Shown here: one piece after another, positions 15,962-55,945 of the stretch
Layout of the letters: each line of letters begins with the position of its first letter
How positions within the stretch are numbered: position 1 is the stretch's first letter
Origin: Eutreptiella sp. 'Long Island Sound 2002'
Taxonomy: Eukaryota > Protista > Euglenida
DNA: 64,000 nucleotides
NCBI GenBank assembly: GCA_964036045.1
Contig: OZ038378.1
Location: forward strand, 30,814,001-30,878,000
Direction: 5' to 3'
Notes under the pieces: generated by a model
Databases searched by the model: none
What the model saw: only the letters and a program-made list of their open reading frames with translations
Told to the model about the DNA's origin: nothing
Position numbers and translations under genes: made by a program

Positions 15962-15993
15962 CTAGTGTAAATGCCCGCGCTTGAAGCGCGGGC
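15962..15993 (-). terminator. 3' terminus of the large family-A Helitron (9-bp stem, 3-nt loop, 7 nt, CTAG); the second large copy has the same terminus at 34344-34375
   Basis: Minus strand reads GCCCGCGCT-TCA-AGCGCGGGC-ATTTACA-CTAG|T. The inward flank (plus strand ggccgtaccgac...) differs from the mini units (ggccatatcacc...). Confidence 0.9.
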
Positions 15994-16851: not shown

Positions 16852-19800
16852 TCAAGAAAAAATTTCAGACCATACAATGTTCGGAGTGTTTGCTTCCTTA
16901 GTTACATCCCCCCAAGCACGCTCTCCTAAAATGACGCGAACGCCACGGCGTGAGGTAACCCGGGAAAAGCCAACGTACAGCTGTCCATGGGCAAAAACTG
17001 GATTCTCCAAGAGCAACCCCAACCTTTCAAACGACTGCCCTTGGGAACGATTAATCGTCAAGGCAAAAGCCAACTTTATTGGAAATTGTCGCCTGATAAA
17101 TCTGATCGACAACATTTCAGAATCACCACACGTCAAATTGATGCGTGGAATGAGCACAACGTTTCCTTTTCGGGGACCTGAGACAATTTCTGCTTGGATG
17201 TTGAAATCCAGGCACTTTGTTACCAACAAGCGTGTTCCATTCATCAAGCCTTCCGTACGGTTGAGATTGCGCAGTAGAATGATAGGGGCCCCGACCTTAA
17301 TCTTGAGCTCGTGACGTGCCATGCCCGGAGGCTCAAGCTTGTTCAAGAGTTCCGGAGGATACGTAGCTGCATCTTCTTGGCAATCGGCACCAAGATAGTC
17401 CGCAGTGACATAAAGAAACTCCTCTCCTGCCAAGCTCTGCAGGGCCGCTTCATTGATAGCATTGGTTTCTTGATTTCGGGGTGCCAGGATACAACCAGAC
17501 ATAAATTCCTCCTTGCTCATGGTTGGAAAGACGTGGTTTACCAGTGGCCAGGGGTCATCGCTTGGGATCAACATGTCTTCTGGTATGGGCAACGGATTGT
17601 CGATGGTGTCCTCTCCAACGGATAGCAACCAGCGTGCAAACTCACGGGTCTCGTCATCGTCAACTTGAGAAGTGCCTTGCACCCGAATATTGGTCGTCAA
17701 TTCGAGTGTTTTGAAATAGGGCCAGAGGTACGATTTCTTGAGAGTAGCTGCTATCACGGCCGCTCGAGAGCCACGAGGTACAACAGGCAAAATTTGCCTC
17801 CAATCCCCTGTCATGACGACGGTCTTGCCCCCGAATGGAACAAGTCGCAGTGCTTCATTATTTGCACCCATGATATCTTTCAGCAATTCATCCAATACGC
17901 GGAAGCAATCGTTGTCTGCCATGGGAGCCTCATCCCACACAATGAGTTGGCACTCACGAAGTTCCGCGGCACGCTTGCTCTCCACAGGAATGGATGATGT
18001 TCCGCCCTTTTGCGGCGAAATACCAAAAGCTGAGTGCGCAGTTGAACCATCATCCAAAAGAAGAGAAGCGATGCCACTTGAGGCAACCGCAATCGCCCGT
18101 CGTCCCTGACTACGTACATAGGCCAACATCAAATTGTTCACGTAAGTCTTTATGCAGCCACCGCAACTCAAAATAAAGAAGCACTTTGCGTCGTTGTTGT
18201 CCAAATGAGTACTCGCAGTGACCTGGTCGTAGATATTGCGTTGCTGCTCTGTCAAGGTTGGCACACCATCCTCAACGACACGTCGCAAGTGTGCAACATC
18301 ATACCCTTCATCCTGACCGCTAGGCTTATCGGACGTTGCACTGGGCACTGGATATGGCATAGAAGGAAACGAGCGAAGAGAAAGTCCTTGCTTTTGTAGC
18401 ATGCTCTCGACCCGCAATAGGGCTTCATTCACAATCTCGGCATGCGTTGGCTCGTTTTTTGTGCTAGGATGTGTATGTTGCCAATTCCAACGAATGTCGC
18501 TGATGAACTCTTCCTCGTACTTTAACCACAGCTTGTAGGGATCTTTTGGGGAGTTGTACTCCAAAATGGTGCAAAAAAGAAGTCGTAGTCGGCCGGATTT
18601 GTAGTACATTTTTGCCTCGTTCAGGCATTGTTCCCACTCGGTGTCATCTTCTAGAAGGCCGCGACGTACGCATGCTTCTTGAAAAGTGGCACATAGGTTG
18701 CCGTTAACGGTACGCAAATCTTGGAAAGAGGTTGCACCAGGAACATGGTGTAACAATAGTCGGAGAAAGTATACTTCGCCCGCATTCGGGAGCACAAAGT
18801 ACATGCGACCAATTACCGTGTTCAGTCCTCTCTTCCGAATTTTCCATTGTTTGGTCTTTGCATCATACGTGAACCGCTCGGCATAGTCGGTGTACAGCAA
18901 GTGCTTACCGAAAGCATGATCCGGCTTGGCGTTGGACTTCAACCAAGCGTTCAGTGGTGTGTCGGGGGGTCCATCTCCAACGATGTCAGTAAGATGTTGT
19001 TGGTCGTGCCATCGAACGTGCTGCTGGTTTTCTAAGTGAACTGGTAGCCGCAATACCGGGGGAAATTGCTCATGTAGGTCAAATGCCAATAGTCTCCACA
19101 CTCCTTCAGATGTACAAATGTACCGACCCTCCACGAACTCCACAACTTCGTTGACTTGATCGTCTCGTAGGGTGGCGTCGCCCCGGTGGAACCCCTTGTA
19201 AATATACTCGTGCAAGTATTTGATAGCCGCAAGTGAGGCACAATACTCCACGTTAATGTGGCAAGCATATTTTCTGGCCAACGCACGCACATGTGGAACC
19301 ACCCAACGATTATCAAGTTCATGCCCCCTGCATGTTAAAGTGCGGCCGTTGTTGCGACGGCGATAAAGAGGATATCCAATCTCGCTGTTTGTGGTCATAT
19401 CTTGGAATTCCTTCGGGTACCGATTTTTACAACGTCCATCCTTCATGCATGCGCAGTTTGGGTCGAGGGAACCGCATGGACCGTGCATGTAGCATTTTGC
19501 AATAATCTCGTACAGCTCCGGGTCCTCATCCTTGTTTGGAATCTCGGCACAAATGACGGAATCATAATCCTCAGGTGTGAGCAATTTGTAGCCGGCGGCA
19601 AAGATAACCAGGATATGTGCATGTGGTAGCCCACGTTTTTGAAATTCGATGACATACATGTGGCCGACTGTGCGACCAAGACAGCCATCCCTCAAAAGGT
19701 CCTCTAACAAAGATTGCAGCTTCAGTTTGAAAACACGGGTAATCAAATCAGGACGATCATTTGGTTTTTGTCCTGGCAGTAGAACGGCCTCCACCTCTGG

Positions 19801-22787
19801 CCAATTGGGATTGGCTGTCATGGTAATGAACAGGTCTGCCTTGCCCCGTTTGCTACAAATAGCAATCCCATCCTGAAAAGCGGCATGAAGAGCGCGCGGA
19901 CTTCCGCCAAAAGAGCTGGGCAAAATTACCCGCTTTCCAACGGTTGAAGCGTCGCGATCACCTTTTTTGGTAGCATCTTCAACACCGAATACAAATGTGT
20001 GCGCAACTTGGACTGGTTCTGCGAGACATATTGCAAGCGTTGAGATTCCACTTTGCAATACTGGTCCACGATGTATTCCTCGTACAATTTTTGACATCGT
20101 TGCAAATAATTTCCAGTGTATGATTCCGGACGCTGCATGAGGTAGAAGGCGGCAAAGTCTCGGGCTGTAACCGTCTGATGGCTTTTTGGCTTTGGAGCAT
20201 TGTCTTGCTCTAGATTTTCGCATGCACCGCGCTGACGTCGATAAGTGACATTCAGGGGAATATCAGTTGTCCAGCCTTGCTCACCGCGCGGAAAAAGGAG
20301 TACAAAGTGTAAAGGATCGTAGGCAGAGTTCAGGTCGGTGATACGTTTGACTCCACCTCCATGCATGCGGACCGCAATGCTACGAGGAGCGGCGACATGA
20401 TTGCCATCCGGAATGAACGCTGCAATGTCGCTGACACGGGGAACATTGTAGGTGCGTGGGTCAACGTTGGCATTGCACCGCAGCAAGATGGTCACATTGG
20501 GGACCGCAAGTTCAGCCGCGTGTTGAAAAACCTGTACATAGGCATTGTGTGTGTTCAGCATAGCTCCCAGTTGGCGGAGTAGATCCTCTCTCAATTCCGA
20601 TGACAGTGGAAGTCCCTGCCATGCCTTCAGTTGATCTTCGGTTTCCAAAATGTACACCTGTGCAAACCGGGGTGGTTGATTTTCTCTCGGCGTCAGGGGA
20701 CCCATGCGGTGATACACATTTCCAGACACCCGAAACTGGTGGGGGCCACCCGCCATTGGCCCTTTCGTGAACCGCATGTCGATATTTGCTTCAAGAGAGG
20801 CCATGGTGAAGGCTGAGTTGTACTTTCGAATGTTTTGCCGAAAATGGCGTCCTTGTCCAGTTTGCTCGGTCAATAGGGTTTTGAGCGGTTCCGGTGGATC
20901 AAGCAGAATGGGAAGTTTCACTTGTCCGCCACGGCAACAAATGGTAGGTCGCTCGGCACTCCAACGTAAAGCGTGACAATGTTCACACTCCACTTCCATG
21001 TTGTCAAGCACGTGGCGCTTAATGTGGGTAAGATCTTCATCGGCCTTTGGTCTAAACAAGCATTCGTGGCGCAACCTTTGCATTTCCAATGCATGGGCCC
21101 TCCGCGCTCGCCTTTGCTCATTGATGTTGTCTTTGGCCTCTGGATATGATTCCCGTCTTTCCTCATTGATGTTGTCCTTGTTCTGCGTGTACGCCTCTGG
21201 ATATCGCTCCCGTCTTTGCTCATTGATGGTGTCCTTGTTCTGCGCGTACGCCTCTGGATATCGCTCCCGTCTTTGCTCATTGATGGTGTCCTTGTTCTGC
21301 GCGTACGCCTCTGGATATCGCTCCCGTCTTTGCTCATTGATGGTGTCCTTGTTCTGCGCGTACGCCTCTGGATATTTCGCCCGTCTTTGCTCATTGATGT
21401 TGTCCTTGTCCGCCTCCTGATATCGCTGCCGTCTTTGCTCGTTGATGTTGTCCTTGTTTGCCTCTTGATATCGCTCCCGTCTTCGCGCATTGATGCTATC
21501 CTTCTTTTGCGCGTACAGCTGTTTATATCGTTCTCGTTCCCGTCTTTCCTCATTGATGTTGTCCTTGTTCTGCGCGTAAGCCTCTGGATATCGCTCCCGT
21601 CTTTGCTCATTGATGGTGTCCTTGTTCTGCGCTTACGCCTCTAGATATCGCTCCCGTCTTTGCTCATTGATGGTGTCCTTGTTCTGCGCGTACGCCTCTT
21701 GATATCGCTCCTTTCTTTGCTCATTGATGGTGTCCTTGTTCTGCGCGTACGCCTCTGGATATTTCGCCCGTCTTTGCTCATTGATGTTGTCCTTGTCCGC
21801 CTCCTGATATCGCTGCCGTCTTTGCTCATTGATGTTGTCCTCGTTTGCCTCTTGATATCGCTGCCGTCTTCGCGCATTGATGCTATCCTTCTTTTGCGCG
21901 TACAGCTGTTTATATCGTTCTCGTCTTTGCTTATTGACTTCGTCCCTGACATCTTGATATCGTTCGCGTCTTTGCTTATTGAATTCTTCCTTGCTTTGCG
22001 TGCATCGTGCTCGTTTTTCGGCGTGTCTATCATCGCTTTCCCCTGCATTTAGGTCTAAATGTGGTTCTCGCGTTCGCTTTTTTCGTGCTTCTACACCATG
22101 CGTGTCCGCAGAAATGGGTTGTGCCATCACATTTGGAGATCCGAGTGCACGTGATGCACTGCTAGCCGGGTGGCCAAAGTTGGGGTTCATATGTGGGCTC
22201 AATCCGAATTGGCCTGAGCCAGGCGGCGGAATCCTCGCAAAGCTTTGGTGGGAAGATGGATCAAACCAAAGCTGGTTGGGAACATTTTGTGGGGGCGTTG
22301 GCAGATATGGAGGGAAGTATGGCTGAGCTTCGGACAGTAAAGCTGTGGGTGTGTAATTGACCGGCATGCGAAGGACACCCGGGGACGCAACGGCACTGGA
22401 ACTTAGAGGCATGGTGAAGGACAATGACCCGGGCGTTGGGATTGGCCCCTCAAATTGTACATTTGGAGTGGATGGGGTACAGCTTGTTGCCCCAAGCGGT
22501 AACGGCAATGGGCCAGGTTGAACGTTTGAAGTTTGTACAGGTGAAGGATTGGATGATATTGACGGCGAGGAAGCTTCATGCACGGCAATAACTATCCCCA
22601 AAAGCATCATTGCTGACATAAGATCCCTCCAAGCATAGTGGTCCTCCGCTTGCCAAAAGAAAAGACGACCCGTAATCCGCTTTTGAGTTGCATCCATCCA
22701 ACGGTTGAAAATGGGATAATAGTGCATATTCTGTTGTACGAAAGCATGCACTCTTTCCGCGTCATGGTTGGATAATGCAGGCAACAT
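16852..22787 (-). pseudogene. RepHel: Helitron RepHel transposase (Zn-finger + HUH Y2 Rep + PIF1 helicase), disrupted
   Basis: Motifs CEHCHALRW..CCRGG, DLFITMTANPNWPE, VIEFQKRGLPHAHIL (HUH), YLHEYIYKG, LIVWDEAPM, FGGKTVVMTGDWRQILPV, LAFALTINRSQGQSF and AHGQLYVGFSRV. Lesions versus copy 2: TAC>TAA at 21633-21635 (I translated 21632-21089 and it is open and in frame), a 1-bp deletion at ~19985, and Walker A GCGKT>GCIKT. Likely start is the MLP(A/T)LS Met at 22787; the frame is open upstream to 23081. Confidence 0.95.
21100..21960 (-). repeat. In-frame coding tandem repeats (48/57 bp; QEADKDNINEQRRERY / PEAYAQNKDTINEQRRERY) in the RepHel N-terminus; shorter tract in copy 2 at ~39480-40060
   Basis: Direct translation of both copies; copy number and order differ but the frame is kept. 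Confidence 0.93.
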
Positions 22788-27250: not shown

Positions 27251-27276
27251 ATCACAAAGGCAGCCTACCAGAACGA

Positions 27277-30040
27277 GAACTGTGTTGTGCAGAGAGGTTC
27301 AGGGTACCAAACAATGTTGTGCAGAGGTTCGGAAAAGGCTGAATTTTAAAAACATTCTATTGCCTTTGGCAAGACCACCTCACAGAGAATCCACCACCAG
27401 CAATGCACTGTGTTCAACCCTGAAAAGAAAAAACCGTCTTTATGCGTACGTTGCTGAGCAAGCAAGCAAGCTGAGCAAACGGCGAAAGAAAGTGCGGTGA
27501 AAACAGCACGCACAGTTTTCAGAACACACTGTTTGTTCGATACCTGCGGCCGCGCATCACAAAGGCAGTATCAAACCACGACGTCGTTGCGAACGTTGCT
27601 GCTGACGGCTGTCATACCTCGTTTCACAGGCAGGCGCTTCAGCGGGGCAACACACCCAGGGACACACACAGGACATACCACTCTGGGATCTGCCGCTGTT
27701 GGCATCTTCCACAATTGGATCAGCATATCATCCCCCACGGAACCAAGCTGAGCAAACGGCGAAAGAAAGTGCGGTGAAACCAGCACGCACAGTTTTCAGA
27801 ACACACTGTTTGTTCGATACCTGCGGCCGCGCATCACAAAGGCAGCCTACCAGAACGAGAACTGCGTTATGCTCATGATCGCTCTCGACGTCAAAACGAC
27901 GGCAAGTCGCCGGCTCAAGCTGGGAACAATACAAGTCGAAACAACACCTGATCATCTGTCATGCACAGTAGTCTTCGAGTTTTTCAACACGTCCGACGTT
28001 TCTTTCAGCGCGGCCAATAGTTCGTCGTTGGTTTTGAGGCACCTCTGGTCTCTTCTTCATCTCCTCTTCATCCATGTCCTTTTCTTCCTCCTCCAACTGC
28101 TTCTTTTCCTCTTCCTTGGCCTTTTGCTCCTCTTCAACCTTTTTGGCAAGCTCAACATTTCGATTACAATCACTGTTACAAAGGGGGTAGAAAAAATGGT
28201 TTTCAACATGTGTTACATGTTTGTTTTTCCTTAATTGTTCATTCTAACCAAATCAAAATCTAAATCAAAAAATCTTCACCGAGTGACGTGTTGCCCGCCA
28301 TAGCATGCATCATCAGTCACTGTCATCATTTGACGGCATTACTACCTATCAAGTGCATTTGAACGCTTGACCGGGCGGTTTGCGGACCGGCCGGATCCGT
28401 TACCGCCTGCAGCAATACCTTAAATGCTACGCACAGTATCAGTATTCGAAAAACAAAAGTACATTTACGAATCTAAAATTCCCAGACATCGCATTTGCAA
28501 ATCCAAAACTCATTTGCGAATCCAAAATTTCCACAGGCAGCACGCGCGCACGCCAGCAGCAGCGTGCACAATTGGGAGGATTTTTTGGGTATGACGAACG
28601 ACGACGACGAACGAACGAACGAACGAACGAACGTCCATACCACAATTAAATATATTAAGAACTGTGTTGTGCAGAGAGGTTCAGGGTACCAAACAATGTT
28701 GTGCAGAGGTTCGGAAAAGGCTGAATTTTAAAAACATTCTATTGCCTTTGGCAAGACCACCTCAGAGAGAATCCACCACCAGCAATGCACTGTGTTCAAC
28801 CCTGAAAAAAGAAAACCGTCTTTATGCGTACGTTGCTGAGCAAGCAAGCAAGCTGAGCAAACGGCGAAAGAAAGTGCGGTGAAACCAGCACGCACAGTTT
28901 TCAGAACACACTGTTTGTTCGATACCTGCGGCCGCGCATCACAAAGGCAGTATCAAACCACGACGTCGTTGCGAACGTTGCTGCTGACGGCTGTCATACC
29001 TCGTTTCACAGGCAGGCGCTTCAGCGGGGCAACACACCCAGGGACACACACAGGACATACCACTCTGGGATCTGCCGCTGTTGGCATCTTCCACAATTGG
29101 ATCAGCATATCATCCCCCACGGAACCAAGCTGAGCAAACGGCGAAAGAAAGTGCGGTGAAACCAGCACGCACAGTTTTCAGAACACACTGTTTGTTCGAT
29201 ACCTGCGGCCGCGCATCACAAAGGCAGCCTACCAGAACGAGAACTGCGTTATGCTCATGATCGCTCTCGACGTCAAAACGACGGCAAGTCGCCGGCTCAA
29301 GCTGCGAACAATACAAGTCGAAACAACACCTGATCATCTGTCATGCACAGTAGTCTTCGAGTTTTTCAACACGTCCGACGTTTCTTTCAGCGCGGCCAAT
29401 AGTTCGTCGTTGGTTTTGAGGCACCTCTGTTCTCTTCTTCATCTCCTCTTCATCCATGTCCTTTTCTTCCTCCTCCAACTGCTTCTTTTCCTCTTCCTTG
29501 GCCTTTTGCTCCTCTTCAACCTTTTTGGCAAGCTCAACATTTCGATTACAATCACTGTTACAAAGGAGGTAGAAAAAATGGTTTTCAACATGTGTTACAT
29601 GTTTGTTTTTCCTTAATTGTTCATTCTAACCAAATCAAAATCTAAATCAAAAAATCTTCACCGAGTGACGTGCTGCCCGCCATAGCATGCATCATCAGTC
29701 ACTGTCATCATTTGACGGCATTACTACCTATCAAGTGCATTTGAACGCTTGACCGGGCGGTTTGCGGACCGGCCGGATCCGTTACCGCCTGCAGCAATAC
29801 CCTAAATGCTACGCACAGTATCAGTATTCGAAAAACAAGAGTACATTTACGAATCTAAAATTCCCAGACATCGCATTTGCAAATCCAAAACTCATTTGCG
29901 AATCCAAAATTTCCACAGGCAGCACGCGCGCACGCCAGCAGCAGCGTGCACAATTGGGAGGATTTTTTGGGTATGACGAACGACGACGACGAACGAACGA
30001 ACGAACGAACGGACGGACGTCCATACCACAATTAAATCTG
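27277..30040 (+). repeat. 1382-bp tandem duplication of the 5' end of Helitron copy 1
   Basis: Features offset by exactly 1382 bp (27497/28879, 27869/29251, 27280/28662), with AGAACTG microhomology at the junction. The unit includes a Lys/Glu-rich putative exon at ~27950-28170 (minus strand: ELAKKVEEEQKAKEEEKKQLEEEEK). Confidence 0.92.
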
Positions 30041-30044
30041 TTAA

Positions 30045-33000
30045 CTAGTGCGAATGCCCGCGCTTGAAGCGCGGGCCATATCACCATATCACCATAGCAC
30101 CATATCTCACACCGCACCGCATTTCGCAAACCCAATACAACACACCTCATGTCCCGTACCTCATATCCCGTGCCACCTGACTCATGTCTCAAACGTCATA
30201 TCCCGTACTCCATGAGTGAAATTTACCCCTTCTAAACTGTACTCTGACACCACATTTGACACCGCGATTCGCATAATCCATATTTCCAAACACATCACCC
30301 ATACCTCACACTGTGTACAACATACCGCATATCCCATACCTCGTATCCCGTACCTCATGACTCATGTCTCAAACCTCATATCCCGTACTCTATCAAACAT
30401 CATATCCCGTGCTCTATGAGTGAAATATACCCCTCCTAAACTTTACTGTGACACCACATTTGACACCGCGATTCGCATAATCCATATTTCCAAACACATC
30501 ACCCATACCTCACACTGTGTACAACATACCGCATATCCCGTACCTCGTATCCCGTACCTCATGACTCATGTCTCAAACCTCATATCCTGTACTCTATAAG
30601 CGAGAGCGCCACTGCTGCCTGTTGGCTAAAATCGCCAAAAGTCAACAGGCGGGATTATTCGTGCAGGTACCCGGATGATCGATTGTGCAGTACATACAGA
30701 TTTTTAAAACACGTGATTCCATGATTTCAGATCGATTTGTCGTGCCAGAAATCGAAACCGCAAATCCGCCAGATGCCATTTGACGGGCACGCGCGCGCGC
30801 CAGCAGCAGCGAGCACAATTGGGAGGATTTTTTGGGTATGACGAACTACGACGAACGACGACGAACGAACGAACGTCCATACGACAATTAAATATATTAA
30901 GAGAGCCTAGTGCGAATGCCCGCGCTTGAAGCGCGGGCCATATCACCGTATCACCATAGCACCATATCTCACACTGCACCGCATTTCACATACCCAATAC
31001 AACACACCTAATGTCCCGTACCTCATATCCCGTGCCACATGACTCATGTCTCAAACATCATATCCCGTACTCTATTAGTGAAACTTACCCCTCCTAAACT
31101 GTACTCTGACACCACATTTGACACCGCAATTCGCATAATCCATATTTCCAAACACATCACCCATACCTCACACTGTGTACAACATACCGCATATCCCGTA
31201 CCTCGTATCCCGTACCTCATGACTCATGTCTCAAACCTCATATCCCGGACTCTATCAAACATCATATCCCGTACTCTATGAGTGAAATATACCCCTCCTA
31301 AGCTGTACTCTGACACCACATTTGACACCGCGATTCGCATATTCCATATTTCCAAGCACATCACCCATGCCTCACACTGTGTACAACATACCGCATATCC
31401 CGTACCTCGTATCCCGTACCTCATGACTCATGTCTCAAACCTCATATCCCGTACTCTATAAGCGAGAGCGCCACTGCTGCGTGTTGGCTAAAATCGCCAA
31501 AAGTCAACAGGCGGGATTATTCGTGCAGATACCCGGATAATCGATTGTGCAGTACATACAGTTTTTCAAAACACATGATTCCATGATTTCAGATCGATTT
31601 CTCGTGCCAGAAATCGAAATCGCAAATCCGCCAGATGCCATTTGACGGGCACGCGCGCGCGCCAGCAGGAGCGTGCACAATTGGGCGGATTTTTTGGGTA
31701 TGACGAACGACGACGACAAACGACGACGACAAACGACGAACCATAGCACAATTAAATATAACTAGTGCGAATGCCCGCGCTTGAAGCGCGGGCCATATCA
31801 CCATATTACCATAGCACCATATCTCACACCGCACCGCATTTCGCATACCCAATACAACACACCTAATGTCCCGTACCTCATATATCCCGTGCTACCTGAC
31901 TCATGTCTCAAACATCATATCCCGTACTCTATGAGTGAAACCTACCCCTCCTAAACTGTACTCTAACACCACATTTGACACCGCGATTCGCATAATCCAT
32001 ATTTCCAAACACATCACCCATACCTCACACTGTGTACAACATACCGCATATCCCGTACCTCGTATCCCGTACCTCATGACTCATGTCTCAAACCTCATAT
32101 CCCGTACTGTATAAGCGAGAGAACTGTCGCCACTGCTGCCTGTTGGCTAAAATCGCCAAAAGTCAACAGGCGGGATTATTCGTGCAGATACCCGGATAAT
32201 CGACTGTACAGTACATTCAGATTACATGAATCCATGATTTCAGATCGATTTCTCGTGCCAGAAATCGAAATCGCAAATCCGCCAGATGCCATTTGACGGG
32301 CACGCGCGCGCGCCAGCAGCAGCGTGCACGATTGGAAGGATTTTTTGGGTATGACGAACGACGACGACAAACGACGACGACGAACGACGACGAACCATAG
32401 CACAATTAAATATAATAACTAGTGCGAATGCCCGCGCTTGAAGCGCGGGCCATATCACCGTATCACTATAGCACCATATCTCACAATGCAGCGCATTTCA
32501 CATACCCAATACAACACACCTCATGTCCCGTACCTCATATCCCGTGCCACATGACTCATGTCTCCAACATCATATCCCGTACTCTATGAGTTAAACTTAC
32601 CCCTCCTAAACTGTACTCTGACACCACATTTGGCACCGCAATTCGCATAATCCATATTTCCAAACACATCACCCATACCTCACACTGTGTACAACATACC
32701 GCATATCCCGTACCTCGTATCCCGTACCTCACTCAAACATCATATCCCGTACTCTATGAGTGAAATATACCCCTCCTAAACTGTACTCTGACACCACATT
32801 TGACACCGCGATTCGCATAATCCATATTTCCAAACACATCACCCATACCTCACACTGTGTACAACATACCGCATATCCCGTACCTCGTATCCCGTACCTC
32901 ATGACTCATGTCTCAAACCTCATATCCCGTACTATATAAGCAACAGAACTGTCGCCACTGCTGCCTGTTGCCTAAAATCGCCAAAAGTCAACAGGCGGGA

Positions 33001-34343
33001 TGATTCGTGCGGATACCCGGGTAATCGATTATACAGTACATACAGATTTTTAAACCACGTGATTCCATGATTTCAGATCGATTTCTCGTGCCAGAAATCG
33101 AAATCGCAAATCCGCCAGATGCCATTTGACGGGCACGCGCGCGCGCCAGCAGGAGCGTGCACAATTGGGCGGATTTTTTGGGTATGACGAACTACGACGA
33201 CGAACGAACGAACGAACGAACGTCCATAGCACAATTAAATATAATAAGATAACTAGTGCGAATGCCCGCGCTTGACGCGCCCGCCATATCACCTTATCAC
33301 CATAGCACCATATCTCACACCGCACCGCATTTCGCAAACCCAATACAACACACCTCATGTCCCGTACCTCATATCCCGTGCCACATGACTCATGTCTCAA
33401 ACATCATATCCCGTACACTATGAGTATAATGTACCCCTCCTAAACTGTACTCTGACACCACATTGCACACCGCGATTCGCATAATCCATATTTCCAAACA
33501 CATCACCCATGCCTCACACTGTGTACAACATACCGCATATCCCGTACCTCGTATCCCGTACCTCATGACTCATGTCTCAAACCTCATATCCCGTACTCTA
33601 TGAGTGAAATATACCCCGGCTAAACTGTACTCTGACACCACATTTGACACCGCGATTCCCATAATCCATATTTCGAAACACATCACCCATACCTCACACC
33701 GTGTACAACATACCGCATATCCCGTACCGGGTATCCCGTACCTCATGACTCATGTCTCAAACCTCATATCCCGTACTCTATAAGCGAGAGAACTGTACTC
33801 TATGAGTGACATTTACCCCTCCTAATGACTCATGTCTCAAACATCATATCCCGTACACCAAGAGTGAAATTTACCCCTCCTAAACTGTACTCTGACACCA
33901 CATTTGACACCGCGATTCCCATAATCCATATTTACAAACACATCACCCATACCTCACACTGTGTACAACATACCGCATATCCCGTACCTCGTATCCCGTA
34001 CCTCATGACTCATGTCTCAAACCTCATATCCCGTACTCTATAAGCGAGAGACCTGTCGCCACTGCTGCCTGTTGGCTAAAATCGCCAAAAGTCAACAGGC
34101 GGGATTATTCGTGCCGATACCCGGATAATCGATTGTACAGTACATACGGATTTTTAAAACACATGACTCGATGATTTCAGATCGATTTGTCGTGCCAGAA
34201 ATCGAAATCGCAAATCCGCCAGATGCCATTTGACGGGCACGCGCGCGCGCCAGCAGCAGCGTGCACAATTGGGAGGATTTTTTGGGTATGACGAACGACG
34301 ACGAACGACGACGAACGATGAACCATAGCACAATTAAATATAA
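30045..34343 (-). mobile_element. Second tandem array of family-A mini-Helitrons (5 units)
   Basis: Hairpin+CTAG termini at 30045, 30907, 31762, 32419 and 33253; same unit architecture as 8348-15961. Confidence 0.88.
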
Positions 34344-35236
34344 CTAGTGTAAATGCCCGCGCTTGAAGCGCGGGCCGTACCGACAACAGGGCAGCTGTAC
34401 TCATGAATTTGGCCCCTTGGAGGAATCCGTACCTTTCGTTGAATGGAGTGTTGCAAATGGATTTTGACCACGTTGCAAAGTGCAACATCTATTAGGTGGG
34501 GGCAAAACACTTCTAATGGGCATTATCCTTTTTGCGGTAAAGTATTCGCTGTTTTCATGTTTGTAGCATTCTAGCTAACGAATTTTGAAAAAAAAAAGTA
34601 ATGAGGAACACAGTTTAAGGGCACCTCGTAACGCCGCCTCGTTCAATTGTAGTTGGAAGTTTTTGAGGCTTTGAAAATTGACGGGCTTATAGTAGCAAGC
34701 CATTGCTCTTTATGAGAACCTGAAAAGAATTATGACCAACGTCCTTACCCGAAGGGAATGAAGGTGTTTACCAGACACAATGTGGCAAATAATTGCGTTT
34801 GAAAATTGTTTTGCTATTTAATGGGACGAAACATATTTTCAGGCAAATAGACCCTTGACAATATTCACTTTGGAGGCAAGTTCACCCACACACCAACAGG
34901 AATACCAACGGACAATAGCTACATGAAAGTTGAATCTCGCATCATACAAGGTTCAAAGCGTTTGCCTACTTGCTGGCGTCGCCCCAAGCACATGTTCCTA
35001 AACTAACACGGCTTGTACGGCATAATGTACATTGTCAGCAGGTGCGCCGTTAGGGATAGAGGTTGACTTAGCACCAAAGTTGTGGTTAGGGTTAGGGCAA
35101 GGCTCAAGGTGAGGATTGGTTTCAAATATATGTAGAAAACGGTTGGTCTCAGATGTAAATGGAACGTGAACAAGACACACGCCGGTGTCGAGTGGAGCCA
35201 CACGTCATCCAGCAAGGCAACGGACGACGACCGAAA

Positions 35237-38200
35237 TCAAGAAAAAATTTCAGACCATACAATGTTCGGAGTGTTTGCTTCCTTAGTTACATCCCCCCAA
35301 GCACGTTCCCCTAAAATGACGCGAACGCCACGGCGTGAGGTAACCCGGGAAAAGCCAACATATAGCTGTCCATGGGCAAAAACAGGATTCTCCAAGAGCA
35401 ACCCCAACCTTTCAAACGACTGCCCTTGGGAACGATTAATCGTCAAGGCGAAAGCCAACTTTATTGGAAATTGTCGCCTGATAAATCTGATCGACAACAT
35501 TTCAGAATCACCACACGTCAAATTGATGCGTGGAATGAGCACAACGTTTCCTTTTCGGGGACCTGAGACAATTTCTGCTTGGATGTTGAAATCCAGGCAC
35601 TTTGTTACCAACAAGCGTGTTCCATTCATTAACCCCTCCGTACGGTTGAGATTGCGCAGTAGAATGATAGGGGCCCCCACCTTAAGCTTGAGCTCGCGAC
35701 GTGCCATGCCCGGAGGCTCAAGCTTGTTCAAGAGTTCCGGAGGATAGGTAGCTGCATCTTCTTGGCAATCGGCACCAAAAAACTCCGCACTATCATAAAG
35801 AAACTCCTCTCCTGGCGAGCTCTGCAGCGCCGCTTCGTTGATAGCGTTGGTTTCTTGATTTCGGGGTGCCAGGATACAACCAGACATAAATTCCTCCTTG
35901 CTCATGGTTGGAAAGACGTGGCCAGGGGCCAGGGGTCATCGCTTGGGATCAACATGTCTTCTGGTATGGGCAACGGATTGTCGATGGTGTCCTCTCCAAC
36001 AGATAGCAACCAGCGTGCAAACTCACGGGTCTCGTCATCGTCAACTTGAGAAGTGCCTCGCACCCGAATATTGGTCGTCAATTCGAGTGTTTTGAAATAG
36101 GGCCAGAGGTAGGATTTCTTGAGGGTAGCTGCTATCACGGCCGCTCGAGAGCCACAAGGTACAACAGGCAAAATTTGCCTCCAATCCCCCGTCATGACGA
36201 CGGTCTTGCCCCCGAAGGGAACAAGTCGCAGTGCTTCATCATTGGCACCCATGATATCTTTGAGTAATTCATCCAATACACGGAAGCAATCGTTGTCTGC
36301 CATGGGAGCCTCATCCCACACAATGAGATGGGACTCATGAAGTTCCGCGGCACGTTTGCTCTCCACGGGAATGGATGATGTTCCGCCCTTTTGCGGCGAA
36401 ATACCAAAAGCTGAGTGTGCAGTTGAACCATCATCCAAAAGAAGAGAAGCGATGCCACTTGAGGCAACCGCAATCGCCCGTCGTCCCTGACTCCGTACAT
36501 AGGCCAACATTAAATTGTTCACGTAAGTCTTTCCGCAACCACCGCAACTCAAAAAAAAAAAGCACTTTGCGTCGTTGTTGTCCAAATGTGTACTCGCAGT
36601 GACGTGGTCGTAGATGTTGCGTTGCTGCTCTGTCAAGGTTCGCACACCATCCTCAACAACACGTCGCAAGTGTGCAACATCATACCCTTCATCGTGACCG
36701 CCAGGCTTATGGGACATTGCACTGGGCACTGGATATGGCATCGAAGGAAACGAGCGAAGAGAAAGTCCTTGCTTTTGCAGCATGCCCTCGACCCGCAATA
36801 GGGCTTCATTCACAACGTCGGCATGCGTTGGCTCGTTTTTTGCGCCAGGATGTGTGCGTTGCCAATTCCAACGAATGTCGCTGATCAACCCTTCCTCGTA
36901 CTTTAACCACAGCTTGTAGGGATCTTTTCGGGAGTTGTACTCCAAGATGGTGCAAAAAAGAAGTCGTAGTCGGCCGGATTTGTAGTACATTTTTGCCTCG
37001 TTCAGACATTGTTCCCACTCGGTGTCATCTTCTAGAAGGCCGCGACGTACGCATGCTTCTTGAAAAGTGGCACATAGGTTGCCGTTAACGGTACGCAAAT
37101 CTTGAAAAGAGGTTGCACCAGCAACATGGTGTAACAATAGTCGAAGAAAGTATACTTCGCCCGCATTCGGGAGCACAAAGTACATGCGACCAATTACCGT
37201 GTTTAGTCCCCTCTTCCGAATTTTCCATTGTTTGGTCTTTGCATCATACGTGAACCGCTCGGCATAGTCGGTGTACAGCAAGTGCTTACCGAAGGCATGA
37301 TCCGGCTTGGCGTTGGACTTCAACCAAGCGGTCAGTGGTGTGTCGGGGGGTCCATCTCCAACGATGTCAGTAAGATTTTGTTGGTCGTGCCATCGAACGT
37401 GCTGCTGGTTTTCTAAATGAACTGGTAGCCGCAATACCGCGGGAAATTGCTCATGTAAGTCAAATGCCAATAGTCTCCACACTCCTTCAGATGTGCAAAT
37501 GTACCGGCCCTCCACGAACTCCACAACTTCGTTGACTTGATCGTCTCGTAGGGTGGCGTCGCCCCGGTCAAACCCCTTGTAAATATACTCGTGCAAGTAT
37601 TTGATAGCCGCAAGTGAGGCACAGTACTCCACGTTGATGTGGCAAGCATATTTTCTGGCCAACGCACGCACATGTGGAACCACCCAACGATTATCAAGTT
37701 CATGCCCCCTGCATGTTATAGTGCGGCCGTTGTTGCGACGGCGATAAAGAGGATATCCATTCTCGCTGTTCGTGGTGACATCTTGAAATTCCTTCGGGTA
37801 CCGATTCTTACAATGTCCATCCTTCATGCATGCACAGTTCGGGTCGAGGGAACCGCATGGACCGTGCATGTAGCATTTTGCAATAATCTCGTACAGCTCC
37901 GGGTCCTCATCCTCGTCTGGAATCTCAGCACAAATGACGGAATCATAATCGTCAGGTGTGAGCAATTTGTAGCCGGCGGCAAAGATAACCAGGATATGTG
38001 CATGTGGTAGCCCGCGTTTTTGAAATTCGATGACATACATGTGGCCGACTGTGCGACCAAGACAGCCATCCTTCAGAAGGTCTTCTAACAAAGACTGCAG
38101 CTTCAGCTTGAAAACGCGGGTAATCAAATCGGGACGATCATTTGGTTTTTGTCCTGGCAGTAGAGCGGCCTCCACCTCCGGCCAATTGGGATTGGCTGTC

Positions 38201-40575
38201 ATGGTAATGAACAGGTCTGCCTTGGCCCGCTTGCTACAAATAGCAATCCCATCCTGAAAAGCGGCATGAAGAGCGCGCGGACTCCCGCCAAAAGGGCTGG
38301 GCAAAATTACCCGCTTTGCAACGGATGAAGCGTCGCGATCACCTTTTTTGGTGGCATCTTCAACACCCGAATACAAATGTGTGCGCAATTTGGACTGGTT
38401 CTTGGAGACATGTTGCAAGCGTTGAGATTCCACTTTGCAGTACTGGTCCACGATGTATTCTTCGTACAATTTTTGGCATCTTTGCAAATAATTTCCAGTG
38501 TACGATTCCGGACGTTGCATGAGGTAGAAGGCGGCAAAGTCTCGAGCTGTAACCGTCTGATGGCTTTTTGCCTTTGGGGCATTGCCTTGCTCTAAATTTT
38601 CGCATGCACCGCGCTGACGCCGATAAGTGACATTCAGGGGAATGTCAGTTGTCCAGCCTTGCTCACCGCGCGGAAAAAGGAGTACAAAGTGTACAGGATG
38701 GTAGGCAGAGTTCAGGTCGGTGATACGCTTGACCCCACCCCCATGCATGCGGACCGCAATGCTACGAGGAGCGGCGACATGACTGCCATCCGGAATGAAT
38801 GCTGCAATGTCGCTGACACGGGGAACATTGTAGGTGCGTGGGTCAACGTTGGCATTGCACCGCAGCAGGATGGTCACGTTGGGGACCTCAAGTTTAGCCG
38901 CGTGGTGAAAAACCTGTACATAGGCATTGTGTGTGTTCAGCATAGCTCCCAGTTGGCGGAGTAGATCCTCTCTCAGTTCCGATGACAGTGGAAGTCCTTG
39001 CCATGCCTTCAGTTGATCTTCGGTTTCCCAAATGTACACCTGTGCAAACCGGGGTGGTTGATTTTCTCCGGGCGTCAGGGGACCCATGCGGTGATACACA
39101 TTTCCAGACACCCGAAACTGGTGAGGGCCACCCGCCATTGGCCCTTTCTTGAACCGCATGTCGATATTTGCTTCAAGAGAGGCCATGGTGAAGGCTGAGT
39201 TGTACTTCCGAATGTTTTGCCGAAAATGGCGTCCCTGTCGCGTTTGCTCGGTCAATAGGGTTTTGAGCGGTTCCGGTGGATCAAGCAGAATGGGAAGTTT
39301 CACTTGTCCGCCACGGCAACAAATGGTAGGTCGCTCGGCACTCCAACGTAGAGCGTGACAATGTTCACACTCCACTTCCATGTTGTCAAGGACGTGGCGC
39401 TTGATGTGGGTAATATCCTCATCGGCCCTTGATCTAAACAAGCATTCCTGGCGCAACCTTTGCATTTCCAATGCATGAGCCCTCCGCGCTCGCCTTTGCT
39501 CATTGAGGTTGTCTTTGTTCTGCGCGTACACCTCTGGATATTGCACCCGTCTTTGCTCATTGATGTTGTCCTTGTCCGCCTCTTGATATCGCTCCCGTCT
39601 GTGCTCATTGATGTTGTCCTTGTCCGCCTCTTGATATCGCTGCCGTCTTTCCTCATTGACGTTGTCCTTGTCCACCTCTTGATATCGCTCCCGTCTTTGC
39701 TCATTGATGTTGTCCTTGTTCTGTGCGTACGCCTCTGGATATCGCTCCCGTCTTTGCTCATTGATGTTGTCCTTGTCCGCCTCTTGATATCGCTCCCGTC
39801 TGTGCTCATTGATGTTGTCCTTGTCCGCGTCTTGATATCGCTGCCGTCTGTGCTCATTGATGTTGTCCTTGTCCGCCTCTTGATATCGCTGCCGTCTGTG
39901 CTCATTGATGTTGTCCTTGTTTGCCTCTTGATATCGCTGCCGTCTTCGCGCATTGATGCTGTCCTTCTTTTGCGCGTACAGTTGTTTATATCGTTCTCGT
40001 CTTTGCTTATTGACTTCGTCCCTGACCTCTTGATATCGTTCGCGTCTTTGCTTATCGATTTCTTCCTTGCTTTTTGTGCATCGTGCTCGTTTTTCGGCGT
40101 GTCCATCATCGCTTCCCCCTGCATTTAGGTCCAAATGTGGTTCTCGTTGTCGCTTATTTCGTGCTTCTGCGCCATGCGTGTCCGCAGAAATGGGTTGTGC
40201 GATCACATTTGAAGATCCGAGTGCACGTGATGCACTGCTAGCCGGAGTGGATGGACTGGATGCGGTACAGCTTGTTGCCACAAGCGGTGACGGCAATGGG
40301 CCAGGTTGAACGTTTGAAGTGTGTACAGATGGAGGATTGGATGATATTGACGGCGAGGAAGCTTCATGCACGGCCGTAACTATCCCCGATTGCATCATTG
40401 CTGACATAAGATCCCTCCAAGCATAGTGGTCTTCTGCTTGCCAAAAGAAAAGACGATCCGTAATCCGCTTTTGAGTTGCATCCATCCAACGGTTGAAAAT
40501 GGGATAATAGTGCATATTGTGTTGCACGAAAGCATGCACTCTTTCCGCATCATGGTTGGATAATGTAGGCAACAT
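35237..40575 (-). CDS. RepHel: Helitron RepHel transposase, nearly intact (single frameshift at ~35915 in the helicase)
   Basis: The 1655-aa ORF 35902-40869 holds the Zn-finger, Rep motifs 1-3, Walker A SCGGCGKT, DEAPM, GDWRQILPV and LTTNIR. The C-terminal 222 aa are in another frame. Copy 1 gtggtttaccagtggccagggg versus copy 2 gtggccaggggccagggg is a net 4-bp loss. Confidence 0.93.
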
Positions 40576-42167: not shown

Positions 42168-42668
42168 TCACTTCTGACCAAAAAATTGGTCTAGAGTGCG
42201 TTGTTTGCAATCTGAGTCATGTGATTGTTTAGGCATTCGTAAACGTTGGTTGCCCGTGCGGGGTGGTTGCCCGTGCGGGGTGCTGCCTTTGCTGATGTGT
42301 CTTTCTTGTCGTTGAGGTTTCTGACTCTTCATGGCACGTTGTAGGCTCGTATGAGGCAACGCTTTTCGGGCTGCAAATGCAAAAATCGGAGCAATTTGCC
42401 GAGACTGTTGGGACAAAGTGTCGTCGGCCTTGGATGCGGAAGAGGACGAAGGTGTTGCTTGGACGCTCGTTGATGCAGCTGAAACAGACAACCCATCAGC
42501 CAACATATCTTTCATTAAACAGGCCCAAGCACGCTCGTCGTCCTCATTCCAAGAATAGAAATTTCGGCTGGGATCGTCATATGCAATCACCACGGGGGCG
42601 TACTCTGGGTGACTTTGCGCAAACATGTGTACTTTCTCAAGATCAAGTATAGACAAAATGGGGAACAT
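42168..42668 (-). CDS. 166-aa accessory protein: paralogue of the RepHel N-terminal domain, low-complexity linker and C-terminal PIP box (QRTLDQFF)
   Basis: Intact ORF from the Met at 42668. By hand alignment 21 of 59 positions are identical to RepHel residues MLPTLS..MMQSG (one 5-aa gap). The C-terminus KQRTLDQFFGQK* matches the PIP consensus QxxLxxFF. Confidence 0.75.
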   Translation of the reverse strand: MFPILSILDLEKVHMFAQSHPEYAPVVIAYDDPSRNFYSWNEDDERAWACLMKDMLADGLSVSAASTSVQATPSSSSASKADDTLSQQSRQIAPIFAFAARKALPHTSLQRAMKSQKPQRQERHISKGSTPHGQPPRTGNQRLRMPKQSHDSDCKQRTLDQFFGQK

Positions 42669-43071
42669 GGTGCAGACTCTACCATAAAACAAGGCGGAGA
42701 AGCGTGACATGACCTGACAAAGGACTATGGTCATATTCTGCCAATCTTTCACAAGTGGCACGGCATACAACACCATGGAAAACACTCTCGTTCCTACACG
42801 TAAGTGCACGAGGTTTTTGTTGCTGTGTGGTGATGGGTTGCACCAGCAGCGCCAACCTGCGTAGACGTAAAAAATCCCGGTGCAACTAACCAGCATTTGC
42901 CTAAATGAGTCCTAGCTGCTCCAATAGATTAGGCCACACAACAACAACATGCCCTTCGAGGGTGCACCGCTGGGTGCAACACGGCAATGTCGCTCACATT
43001 GCAAACGCAAGGGTGCAGCGAAGTCCAATTCAGACCCCTTTGCCGGTTGACAACCTTTAGTATGGTTTTTA

Positions 43072-44466
43072 TCATGGTGTATTGCCCACAACCTGACAGC
43101 CACGCAACACATCGATGTACGTTGCCCCATCGTGAAAGTACAACCATGTGGCGTCGCCTACGTACATCATTTTGCCAACACCCTTCAAAATGGGCTGCAC
43201 ATCTTGCGGTGTAAGGACCACAGGGAAAATCATGGGTTTCAGCGGTGCGGCCGCCTTGGCATTAGGAAATTTGGCAATAGCATTCAGTGTGTCCAGTGGA
43301 TTTTCGAACATGACCTTGGCCCCCGCTTGGGCGTCTACGGCCATGTAGTACGGTTTTAGGCCGGTGCCAATGACCGTTGCGAGCTCAATGTACGACTTCA
43401 CGGTTGCCACCGAGATCTCCGGGGCAGGAAGGTTGACAACCACGTATGAAGTGGAAGGACTTGGCTTTTCTTCCAAGGAGGCCAAAAAAGCCTCACAATC
43501 GCCATCAGACACATCATCGTCGATCTTATGCTCCGTTGCCGACTTGTAATAGAAGCGGCGTGCAACTTTAATGCGGTCTTCAGGCTTGGCTTGATTGAGC
43601 AACTATTTCAAACCCACCTGTAACTTGTCTATCACCTTCTTATCCAGTACGGCCGCCATCTTCGCACTGCAGAACGCCTTTTCAACATTGATGGGTGTTG
43701 GCTGGCCTTGCACAGTGTATGTCCATTTGGTCGTTTCTGCCCGCTGCCTTTTATCCGAATCCTCTTGGACCGTGGCAGGCGAACTTTCTGCGCTTTTGCC
43801 CGAACTTTTCTCAACGGCATCTGGTGCTTTTCTTTTCAGAGACCCAGAGCGAGTCTTCAACGGGGTCAATGCCATGTTGGGATCCACCCAAAGAAAAAAA
43901 TCGCACGCTTCGCACGAGTAGAATGAACGACCAGCATTCTTCGTGTTTGTGCACGAGTGTACTTCTGGCACCTCTCCGCAGTCACACCGTGGCTGACCAT
44001 CTGCCCCTTTGCAACTTGGGTGAATGATTGCCCAAGATTTGAAGCACTTGTCTTCTTTTTCCGGACATGAGCGCGTCAAACACCCGTAGTTTGCTTTGCT
44101 TGAGCAATATCGCACCTCAAACTTGTTGCCACACTTGCAGGGTTGCTTGATCCAGTATGCTTTGGCAGCGGCTGCACTATCGAATTCGATCTCAATATTG
44201 GAAGCCGACATGTCAACAACAACAATGATTCTACGTTTAGCAGAAGTGGTGCAGCCAGGTGCGTTCATTGCAACATCAACCATGTGATTCTTAGGATGTC
44301 TGTGAGCACCGGTGTCAACCAACGTATAGTATTGGGGCAAAACAATTGGAAAGTTGTTGCTCCGCCTTTTCATGTCAATGCCACCTGCACATCCAATGGG
44401 CACTTTTTCTTGGCTACCAAACCTTTGACGCCTAGAATCCATCATTTTTTGCTTGTCGGCTACCAA
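43072..44466 (-). pseudogene. Accessory ORF with two GRF-type zinc fingers and a possible RRM-like C-terminal domain, split by one in-frame TAG at 43603-43605
   Basis: CKCGNKFEVRYCSSKANYGCLTRSCPEKEDKCFKSW (degenerate GRF) and CDCGEVPEVHSCTNTKNAGRSFYSCEACDFFLWVD (canonical GRF). ORFs 43603-44466 and 43072-43602 are contiguous in one frame (TTG AAA TAG TTG CTC). The RRM call (YVVVNLP...AKVMFENPLDTLNAIAKF) is tentative. Confidence 0.75.
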
Positions 44467-47371: not shown

Positions 47372-47410
47372 CTAACCCTAACCCTAACCCTAACCCTAAC
47401 CCTAACCCTA
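47372..47410 (-). repeat. Interstitial telomeric tract (TTAGGG)6.5
   Basis: Perfect (CTAACC)n, 39 bp, on the plus strand. Confidence 0.97.
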
Positions 47411-49450: not shown

Positions 49451-49989
49451 GCAGTGGCTGCAGCATTCACCCCTCCAGAAGGCGTTTCACATTCGCGGTC
49501 CGCGTGCTCAGCACCGGCGATGTCCAAAGCGAGCAGAGCATTGGAAGCAGTCTTGACTTGGACTTCTGCAATGGAAGGGGGCACTGCCCAAGGTTGCAAT
49601 TCCTCGGGCCTCCATCAAGACGAAGGGTCCACCCAATCAGGCACGCAACTTACCAAATTCACTATCCCCTCCTTCGCTTTGCCCATCTCCACTTTCACCA
49701 GCGGTCGGGGGAGCTTGTGGTACTTTATACACAGATAGACAGGATGCGTCCTGGGCAAAATCGCCGAGGACATTCTTCGAATGCATGAGTACTAATGGAA
49801 TTCATGAATGTTAAGTTACAAACTTCAAAAGGAATGTCGGTGCCTAACGAAGCCAAAGAAAAATGAACAACTTCACCAACGCATGCTTCAAATGGCCTGT
49901 TGTTTTTCAACACCCACATTGGATGTCACGGACATCACTGTTTTGACCACCAGGCACCATTCGGGTACCAACCAATTTGCTGCTTTTCT

Positions 49990-50436
49990 TCAGTCGTCTT
50001 CATCCCATTCTCTTTCATCATCGCAGGAAAGGTCGATTGAAGAATCATCGGAGCACCAATCCGAGTTATATTCGGATCGGTGGTAGCAGCCGGATCCACT
50101 TCCGTAATCAACGCGTACTCCATCTTCCGCAAGCTGGGTGCATTGAGAACATGCACATTGTTCTCCACCCAGCAATTGACAGTGTTGGTTGCGAATCGCC
50201 CACCCAAGGCAATACCAACATGGCCTTGGGTCTCCAGGGTAACATCCGGCACATAATTTTGCCGCCACTTCCCGGATTTTCGGTAATCCCATCCGCCGTG
50301 CCTTTTGGTGCACTTGATCATGGCCAATGGGACTTTCGACATCGATATAGTCCAGCGGTCTCTTCTCTTCCTCCGTTCCTTGAAGAAGTGGGGGAGCCCA
50401 GCTTGGCAACGAAGCTGATGGTTGAGCCCGAGGCAT
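49990..50436 (-). CDS. 148-aa Cys-rich ORF with an acidic tail (CAGC..CWYC..CxCSQC); intact inverted copy at 54853-55305 (+), truncated copy at ~23500-23624
   Basis: The frame is open in two diverged copies with Cys spacing conserved; unknown family. Confidence 0.4.
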   Translation of the reverse strand: MPRAQPSASLPSWAPPLLQGTEEEKRPLDYIDVESPIGHDQVHQKARRMGLPKIREVAAKLCAGCYPGDPRPCWYCLGWAIRNQHCQLLGGEQCACSQCTQLAEDGVRVDYGSGSGCYHRSEYNSDWCSDDSSIDLSCDDEREWDEDD

Positions 50437-54762: not shown

Positions 54763-55945
54763 GCATGATGTCTTCCTTGCCTTTCTTACCTTGCCTTGAA
54801 GCACCCACGCTCTGACACAAGCTGCAATTTCAGACCTCATAAATCAAACATAATGCCTCGGGCACAACCATCAGCTTCGTTGCCAAGCTGGGCTCCCCCA
54901 CTTCTTCAAGGAACGGAGGAAGAGAAGAGACCGTTGGATTATATCGATGTCGAAAGTCCCATTGGCCATGATCAAGTGCACCAAAGGCCACGGCGGATGG
55001 GATTACCGAAAATTCGGGAAGTGGCAGCAAAATTATGTGCCGGATGTTACCCTGGAGACCCAAGGCCATGTTGGTATTGCCTTGGGTGGGCGATTCGCAA
55101 CCAACACCGTCGATTGCTGGGTGGAGAGCAATGTACATGTTCTCAATGCACCCGGCTTGCGGAGGACGGAGTACGCGATGATTACGGAAGTGGATCCGGC
55201 TGCTACCACCGAGCCGGATATGACTCGGATTGGTGCTCCGATGAGTCTTCAATCGACCTTTCCTGCGACGACGAGCGAGAATGGGATGAAGATGACTGGT
55301 GGTGAAAGTGGAGATGGGCAAAGCGAAGGAGGGGATAGTGAATTTGGTAAATTGCATGTCTGATTGGGTGGTCCTTTCATCTTGATGCAGGCCCGAGGAA
55401 TTAGAACCTTGGGCAGTGCCCCCTTCCATTGCAGAAGTCCAAGTCAAGACTGCTTCCAATGCTCTGCTCGCTTTGGACGTCGCCGGTGCTGAGCACGCGG
55501 ACCGCGAATGTGAAACGCCTTCTGGAGGGGTGAATGCCCCAGCCACCGCCGATTGGGCCACCATCCAAACACTTCAAAGGTCCGTGACCCCGGGCCGCCT
55601 CCGCACGCAAAGGTCAGCACCACGCAGGATGTCGAAATAAGGAACATTACACCACATCTGCAACCATCTCCATTACTATGCCTGATTGCCAGTGCGCTTA
55701 TTCTCGGTGGAATCATTGGATGCTGTTCCGATCGTCTCACCCTCTGTGCGATGTAACCACGTCACCTGGTGGACGGCATGCTACCCCAAGGCACCAGGCC
55801 TGGAGTCTCCATTACCCTCTTTGCGTTTGGTGGAATGCTGTGCGCCATCGCAGTTTTGCTTGGGATTTCTTTGGGGACAGGATGGATGGTCGGGCCCCAC
55901 ATGTGTTTGTCGAATGATCCTGTCTCTGACGAATGCATTCAAGAC
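54763..55945 (+). repeat. Inverted duplicate of ~49035-50526, flanked by ~650-bp direct repeats (54107-54762 and 56005-56651)
   Basis: ORF pairs 49990-50436(-)/54796-55305(+) and 49935-50342(-)/54947-55363(+) are homologous. The flanking blocks start gcgggaggtatagcgagacc and end gggatggccacttgc. Confidence 0.9.

Follow-up and report, generated by a model that had tools for sequence, protein, structure and literature searches.

Helitrons are bounded either by 5'-TC ... CTRR-3' ends with a 3' hairpin or by Helitron2-type asymmetric inverted repeats, and they generate no target duplication. The accessory genes found in them are of RPA-like, endonuclease and OTU protease types, and we know of no host factors identified for the DNA synthesis in their transposition. 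In other mobile elements, the short proteins IS911 OrfA, IS1 InsA and the P-element KP repressor have the transposase N-terminus in common with the full-length enzyme, and they arise by frameshifting, splicing or deletion. Among cellular proteins, the small disordered PCNA ligands p15PAF and p21 and the C-terminal tails of FEN1 and RNase H2B have a PIP box close to the C-terminal end of a basic, disordered region. Motifs of the PIP type are short and degenerate, and related ones bind Rev1 or Mlh1.

The PIP boxes of pogo, Tigger, Lemi1 and the LINE-1 protein ORF2p bind PCNA, and in LINE-1 the motif is required for transposition (PMC5371812). For Helitrons, recruitment of PCNA and Pol delta has only been suggested, for the Pif1-like helicase domain (PMC8788227). 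Plant Helitrons, for example those of the Mothra family, carry RPA-like accessory genes (PMC4683698). The FoHeli Helitrons of Fusarium have an unannotated upstream ORF, on the opposite strand, that has no known domain (PMC5148889).

The window analysed here is a stretch of 64,000 nucleotides of the Eutreptiella contig OZ038378.1, and the coordinates of its main features are collected in Table 1. ORF166 is a small gene upstream of a RepHel gene in this window, and its product begins with MFPILSILDLEKVH and ends with ...DSDCKQRTLDQFFGQK. Copies of the gene form family 1, to which the window copy belongs, and a distant family 2 in the same genome. On the reading that we prefer, and hold tentatively, ORF166 is a PCNA tether that has a docking domain in common with RepHel. 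The protein would consist of two parts, an acidic three-helix domain anciently duplicated from RepHel and a disordered basic tail of ~100 residues. Its C-terminal motif, K-Q-R-x-L-x-Q-F-[FL], would enter the hydrophobic pocket of host PCNA, and its N-terminal domain (N-domain) would bind the partner of the RepHel N-domain, which could be RepHel itself, a GRF-like zinc-ribbon protein or a common host factor. Clamp and polymerase would in this way be brought to the 3'-OH produced by Rep nicking, where strand-displacement synthesis would drive rolling-circle transposition.

Table 1. Features of the ORF166 locus and of the two RepHel copies, in window coordinates
Feature	Position	Strand	Remarks
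ORF166 (accessory gene)	42168..42668	-	166 codons + TGA stop
ORF166 N-domain, aa 1-60	42489..42668	-	homology to RepHel N-terminus; three-helix bundle predicted by AlphaFold2
Mid-tail motif IAPIF, aa 92-96	42381..42395	-	LAPLF at the equivalent place in family 2
PIP-like motif QRTLDQFF, aa 156-163	42180..42203	-	preceded by DSDCK, followed by GQK and the stop
ORF166 upstream extension (242-aa form)	42669..42896	-	76 open codons
RepHel copy B	35240..40575	-	Pfam Helitron_like_N E 3e-50, PIF1 E 2e-62, Pif1_2B
RepHel N-domain, aa 1-64 from Met at 40575	40384..40575	-	paralogue of ORF166 N-domain
RepHel copy A	16855..22787	-	93 % identical to copy B; frameshift near 19962-19986
orf448/379	43075..44211	-	two GRF-like zinc ribbons; in-frame stop in the window copy at 43603-43605
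orf176	49640..50342	-	located by tblastn; interrupted in the window copy

The N-domain of ORF166 is akin to the start of RepHel, as an earlier note on this DNA had proposed for the first ~60 residues from the sequence alone. BLASTP aligns residues 1-64 of ORF166 with residues 1-69 of RepHel, with 21 identities over 69 columns (E 2e-8). The profile check suggested at that time for the 60-residue domain also gives a significant result, with an hhalign probability of 97.6 % (E 2.7e-12, 60 columns) between the ORF166-type and RepHel-type N-domain profiles. The two N-domains are 30-40 % identical, and the domain signature is W-x2-[DE]-D-x2-A-W-x2-L-M-x2-M. The sequence comparisons support the view that ORF166 encodes, as a protein of its own, a paralogue of the domain at the RepHel N-terminus. 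A tree of these short domains is poorly resolved. Since the ORF166 proteins of both families have the tail motifs in common, the duplication that produced the ORF166 N-domain is, as judged from these motifs, older than the split of the two families.

AlphaFold2, run with a 19-sequence alignment, predicts helices at residues 7-19, 21-31 and 42-57 with a pLDDT of 72-90 over residues 1-60. From residue 66 onward the tail has no predicted secondary structure and a pLDDT mostly below 50. The N-domain has a net charge of -7 in ORF166, against -3 in its family-2 counterpart and -1 in RepHel, and the ORF166 tail has one of +11. Because the domain is acidic and the tail basic, a protein-binding role of the N-domain is favoured over a DNA-binding one. 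A Myb or HTH DNA-binding domain was considered and dropped, since the best Foldseek match of the ORF166 model in the PDB, the Zeste DNA-binding domain, is not significant (E 6.3) and the domain is acidic. Pfam gave only noise for ORF166 at E values up to 10 (SsgA, GDPD_2), and a sequence profile search of the PDB gave nothing below E 0.2. Outside the same genome, a profile search among 1.84 billion representatives brought up false positives from repeat proteins (P0019-P0021, P0023) and nothing else, and a scan of JGI metagenomes yielded no relatives. As far as the databases reach, the N-domain appears to be confined to one genome.

The shared N-domain could also mean that ORF166 is a regulator, possibly a dominant-negative one, in the manner of OrfA, InsA and KP. 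By competing for the partner of the RepHel N-domain it would restrain transposition or set its timing; the terminal motif would then serve for sequestering at replication forks or as a localisation signal. ORF166 lacks the catalytic parts of the transposase and is encoded by a separate small gene upstream of it, as this explanation would have it. However, the known truncated-transposase regulators have a DNA-binding domain in common with their transposase, whereas here the domain is acidic and its fold matches neither HTH nor Myb domains. A role in regulation also leaves unexplained why the PIP-like block should be the most conserved part of the tail, and we consider it unlikely.

The tail of ORF166 carries the PIP-like FF motif within the peptide SDCKQRTLDQFFGQK. 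The earlier note had placed a PIP box at the extreme C-terminus; the motif is present, but GQK follows it, so that it ends three residues before the stop. In family 1 the motif fits the strict consensus Q-x-x-[ILM]-x-x-[FY]-[FY]. Retention of the ORF and the motif in other copies, which the earlier note had put forward as a check, was examined, and the motif is intact in 15 of the 16 family-1 copies. The family-2 motif, QRPLRQFL (in KQRPLRQFL), fits the relaxed consensus only and lies about 9 residues from the end. Between the consensus sequences of the two families, identity is 7/11 in the motif window, 15/55 in the N-domain and 9/83 in the tail outside the motifs, and the 11-residue window equals the best window of the folded domain. 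These values support the PIP-like block as the best conserved stretch of a divergent, predicted disordered tail.

The strict pattern Q..[ILM]..[FY][FY] occurs 48 times in the 614,330 six-frame codons of the window and the loci, or ~8e-5 per codon, with the ORF166 copies counted in. Of the 845 stop-to-stop ORFs that reach 100 aa or more, only ORF166 copies and one other, repeated junk ORF have it within the last 20 residues, from which the chance rate of a near-terminal motif is about 1e-3 per ORF. A PIP-like motif is absent from RepHel, orf448 and orf176, also by the relaxed pattern; if the element addresses PCNA directly, ORF166 would be the sole candidate. A disordered basic tail, as modelled here, is the usual setting of a PIP box.

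It is also conceivable, though rather improbable, that ORF166 is a real accessory protein in which Q-R-x-L-x-Q-F-[FL] is not a PCNA ligand but another kind of short linear motif. It could contact the RepHel helicase or the GRF-like protein, belong to a nuclear import signal, or be an FF motif of the Rev1/Mlh1 type. The departure of family 2 from the strict consensus would fit such a role, as would the conserved D-x-K upstream of the motif and the invariant Q before the F, both of which are unneeded for PCNA binding. Against it, family 1 has the exact strict consensus, its disordered and basic surroundings are those in which PIP boxes typically lie, and F-L endings as in family 2 occur in functional archaeal PIP boxes.

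The intact 166-residue ORF that the earlier note had described upstream of RepHel and in the same orientation holds up, and the window copy is identical to P0007. Its stop lies 1.6 kb from the downstream RepHel Met at 40575. Automatic gene callers give the longer 242-aa form. The extension that distinguishes this form is unlike between the families and is shortened in some copies (P0006, 166 aa; P0008, 202 aa), and a Met equivalent to that at 42668 opens the RepHel N-domain, the family-2 orthologue and P0022. Since the extension is not conserved and the homologous domains start at the equivalent residue, the Met at 42668 is probably the translation start, and the sequence upstream of it is probably a non-coding leader. 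The segment of RepHel that matches ORF166 begins at residue 99 of the longest RepHel ORF, which is the Met at 40575 and probably the true RepHel start. The window copy of ORF166 has a local compensated double frameshift, with GQPPRTG replacing GHSKKNC.

Because the host is eukaryotic, a gene finder of the prokaryotic kind called the ORFs and the frame is open upstream of the Met, ORF166 could be taken for one exon of a larger gene, spliced to orf448 or serving as an alternative first exon of RepHel. In principle, the two N-domains might even be 5' exons that exclude each other. This is very unlikely, since the stops of both orf448 and ORF166 are conserved in the two families and the tail, with its terminal motif, is conserved up to the stop, as a segment removed by splicing would hardly be.

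The ORF166 cluster has at least 18 members with 88-100 % identity on at least 12 contigs, all of them in the ENA assembly ERZ25074135, where the contigs that bear the gene reach several Mb. Family 2 came to light in the profile search mentioned above (1.84 billion representatives) and in a second search, seeded with an alignment, that covered 5.8 billion proteins. Its orthologues (P0025, P0026, P0024, P0027-P0031 and P0033) belong to the same genome and are 21-24 % identical to ORF166 (BLASTP E 4e-7). They retain the N-domain, the mid-tail motif in the form [IL]AP[IL]F, and the terminal block D-x-K-Q-R-x-L-x-Q-F-[FL].

The gene order orf176 > orf448 > ORF166 > RepHel is found in seven family-1 loci, where L001, L002, L004, L005, L006 and the decayed L003 were compared besides the window, and it recurs in family 2. 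In the family-2 loci the homologues of orf448 and orf176 are 42-65 % identical to those of family 1 and RepHel is 35-73 % identical. The earlier description of ORF166 as Helitron-encoded therefore stands as far as the gene order in two families goes, but the termini of the element were not found and synteny is its sole basis. On this basis, membership of ORF166 in the Helitron gene set is supported. RepHel copy A lacks both orf448 and ORF166, and a position of ORF166 outside the element was considered for that reason. It was rejected, as family 2 has the same gene order and copy A joins, at 23500/23501, positions that lie 6.5 kb apart in complete copies; the loss is a clean one, and it is internal because sequence is kept on both sides.

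Selection was assessed in both families. In family 2, the comparison of L007 with L009 (83 % nucleotide identity) gives the true frame of ORF166 a dN/dS of 0.47 (Fisher p 0.0018), and its N-domain one of 0.34, against 0.74-0.75 in the off-frames and 0.5-1.0 in flanking DNA. In family 1 the value for ORF166 is 0.52, versus 0.49 in the presumed non-coding upstream extension, and this comparison was set aside as evidence of selection because the extension equals the ORF and the measure is uninformative for young copies. The selection statistics lend moderate support to function. Length, order, motifs and synteny are all deeply conserved, and on these grounds we hold with good confidence that ORF166 is a real accessory gene of the mobile unit.

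That ORF166 is a non-functional relic, a partly duplicated 5' end of RepHel that is left open by its youth and has a PIP-like end by chance, is highly improbable and, on account of family 2, is the weakest reading: the family-1 copies differ by 2-7 %, the upstream extension is mostly open too with an equal pseudo dN/dS, and the window element is decaying, but the distant family-2 orthologue has kept its length and domain order along with the two tail motifs and the synteny, and its true-frame dN/dS is below that of the off-frames.

orf448 encodes a putative zinc-ribbon protein whose Pfam scores for Zn_ribbon_GRF (22.8-24.1 bits) are under the cutoff of 25.9, and the Cys/His pattern and a GRSFYSC...FFLW signature are visible in the sequence. 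It also has a conserved C-terminal domain of ~180 aa that matches no family and has a dN/dS of 0.22 (p 4e-7) in family 2. Its AlphaFold2 model has a pLDDT of 37 and is unusable. orf448 may be the ssDNA-binding counterpart of the RPA-like genes of plant Helitrons. orf176 is the best conserved of the accessory genes, 65 % identical to the family-2 copy in L009, and had no match in Pfam. An inverted partial copy of orf176 lies at 54947-55354 (+). One could imagine, and we consider it possible but doubtful, that this Helitron lineage carries a replisome-recruitment kit, with a GRF-type zinc-ribbon protein for the displaced single strand and ORF166 as an adaptor that would dock on RepHel by its duplicated N-domain and on PCNA by its PIP motif.

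RepHel copy B consists of the N-domain, an S/T-rich linker, 16-aa basic repeats, a Zn-finger region, Rep and the Pif1 helicase. A tblastn search with the intact RepHel of L001 (1777 aa, L001 12101-17434) places a frameshift in it near 35905-35920. With RepHel B frameshifted, a stop in orf448 and orf176 interrupted, the window element is decaying. The 16-aa repeats, which sit between the N-domain and the Zn-finger region, correspond to a 48-bp tandem repeat at 39494-39966 (21136-21937 in copy A) that encodes ~9-12 basic units, DKDNINEHRRQRYQEA, and the number of units varies by copy. A third, more diverged Helitron helicase fragment with Pif1_2B, 52 % identical to the RepHel C-terminus, lies at 7155-8000 (-).

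The RepHel clusters have 36 and 30 members. The nearest RepHel proteins outside this genome are 40-42 % identical and come from scattered phyla with no taxon signal. The Helitron clade that carries ORF166 appears to be lineage-specific, and the ORF166 family itself has been seen in one genome.

Copies of the unit are arranged in head-to-tail super-arrays with a period of tens of kb, which take up the whole locus of L010 and are also seen in L011 and L012. Within a super-array the order is RepHel, an 860-bp satellite, a spacer, orf176, orf448, ORF166 and again RepHel, and every flank is consequently another copy. Three loci that were extended upstream gave super-arrays and no unique flanks. Six breakpoints (23500/23501, 26508, 46892/47269, 47374, ~8033 and L002 16168) show no TC or CTRR, and a palindrome, CAGCGCCGGCGCTG, lies ~22 nt ahead of one homology end. 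Concatemeric products of rolling-circle replication, or else amplification in tandem, would be expected to leave such super-arrays.

The window contains further repeats. Arrays of the ~860-bp satellite, with a GC skew of -0.33, lie directly downstream of each RepHel (29922-34376 and 8333-15994); the L002 copy has almost none, which indicates that the array grew from an internal unit. An interstitial telomere-type (CCCTAA)5 at 47376-47405 lies within the repeated unit and is found at the same site in L001, L002, L005, L006, L010 and L011, and collinearity with the L003/L004 subfamily ends exactly at its edge. A 137-aa ORF at 57015-57425 (-) is similar to yeast elongation factor 3A in its HEAT region (E 1e-11); it repeats with the unit in L010-L012 and has the look of a piece of a host gene that was captured. 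This eEF3-like fragment and the TTAGGG-type repeats hint at a fungus or protist as the host. Other long tandem repeats occupy 1-6700 (1.95-kb unit), 58858-62772 (~1.1 kb), and 26618-30044 and 63033-64000 (1.39 kb). The 1.95-kb unit has ~235 bp in common with the region after the satellite array. The ORFs of the 1.95-kb, ~1.1-kb and 1.39-kb repeats had no match in Pfam, and an Rfam search of the window gave none.

If ORF166 does link RepHel to PCNA as part of such a recruitment kit, it would indicate, for the first time at the level of a gene, that rolling-circle transposition in eukaryotes uses PCNA-dependent strand-displacement synthesis. The combination of a transposase-derived domain and a putative clamp-binding motif makes the speculation about PCNA recruitment testable. 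A full-text literature search on Helitrons with a PIP box or a GRF zinc finger returned nothing relevant, in keeping with the earlier note, whose author knew of no described Helitron accessory protein of this type, and ORF166 would add a new type to the short list of such genes.

ORF166 is like the FoHeli ORF in being a Helitron-specific upstream ORF without a known domain. The FoHeli ORF, by its description, differs in its opposite orientation, and neither kinship with the transposase N-terminus nor a PIP motif is reported for it. As a putative accessory gene beside RepHel that is related to the replication machinery, ORF166 also resembles the RPA-like genes of plant Helitrons. Unlike these homologues of a host ssDNA-binding protein, it has neither a cellular homologue nor an OB-fold, RPA70-like domain (Pfam at E values up to 10; the predicted fold is helical), and if the RPA-like genes have a functional counterpart here, it is more likely orf448 than ORF166.

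OrfA, InsA and KP are, like ORF166, short proteins that have only the N-terminal domain of the transposase in common with it. In those proteins the domain binds DNA and comes from the transposase gene itself, whereas ORF166 appears to be an old separate paralogue with an acidic domain and a conserved tail of its own. The end of ORF166, ...DQFFGQK, resembles the ...DTFFGVK and ...DDFFKV endings of small PCNA ligands. Unlike these, ORF166 has a folded N-domain in common with a transposase, and it has neither homology to them beyond the motif nor the TD and basic +4 degron signature.

With pogo, Tigger, Lemi1 and LINE-1 ORF2p, ORF166 shares a Q-x-x-[ILM]-x-x-F-[FY] motif in a mobile element, although binding to PCNA is here a prediction. 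In those elements the motif is part of the catalytic protein, whereas here it lies on a separate small protein and RepHel lacks it. If the motif does bind the clamp, this would be the first transposon with a clamp-binding motif on a separate protein, and an example of a transposon that delegates putative clamp binding to an adaptor. ORF166 thus appears to join two known themes, the clamp-binding motif of transposons and the accessory gene of Helitrons, in a new arrangement.
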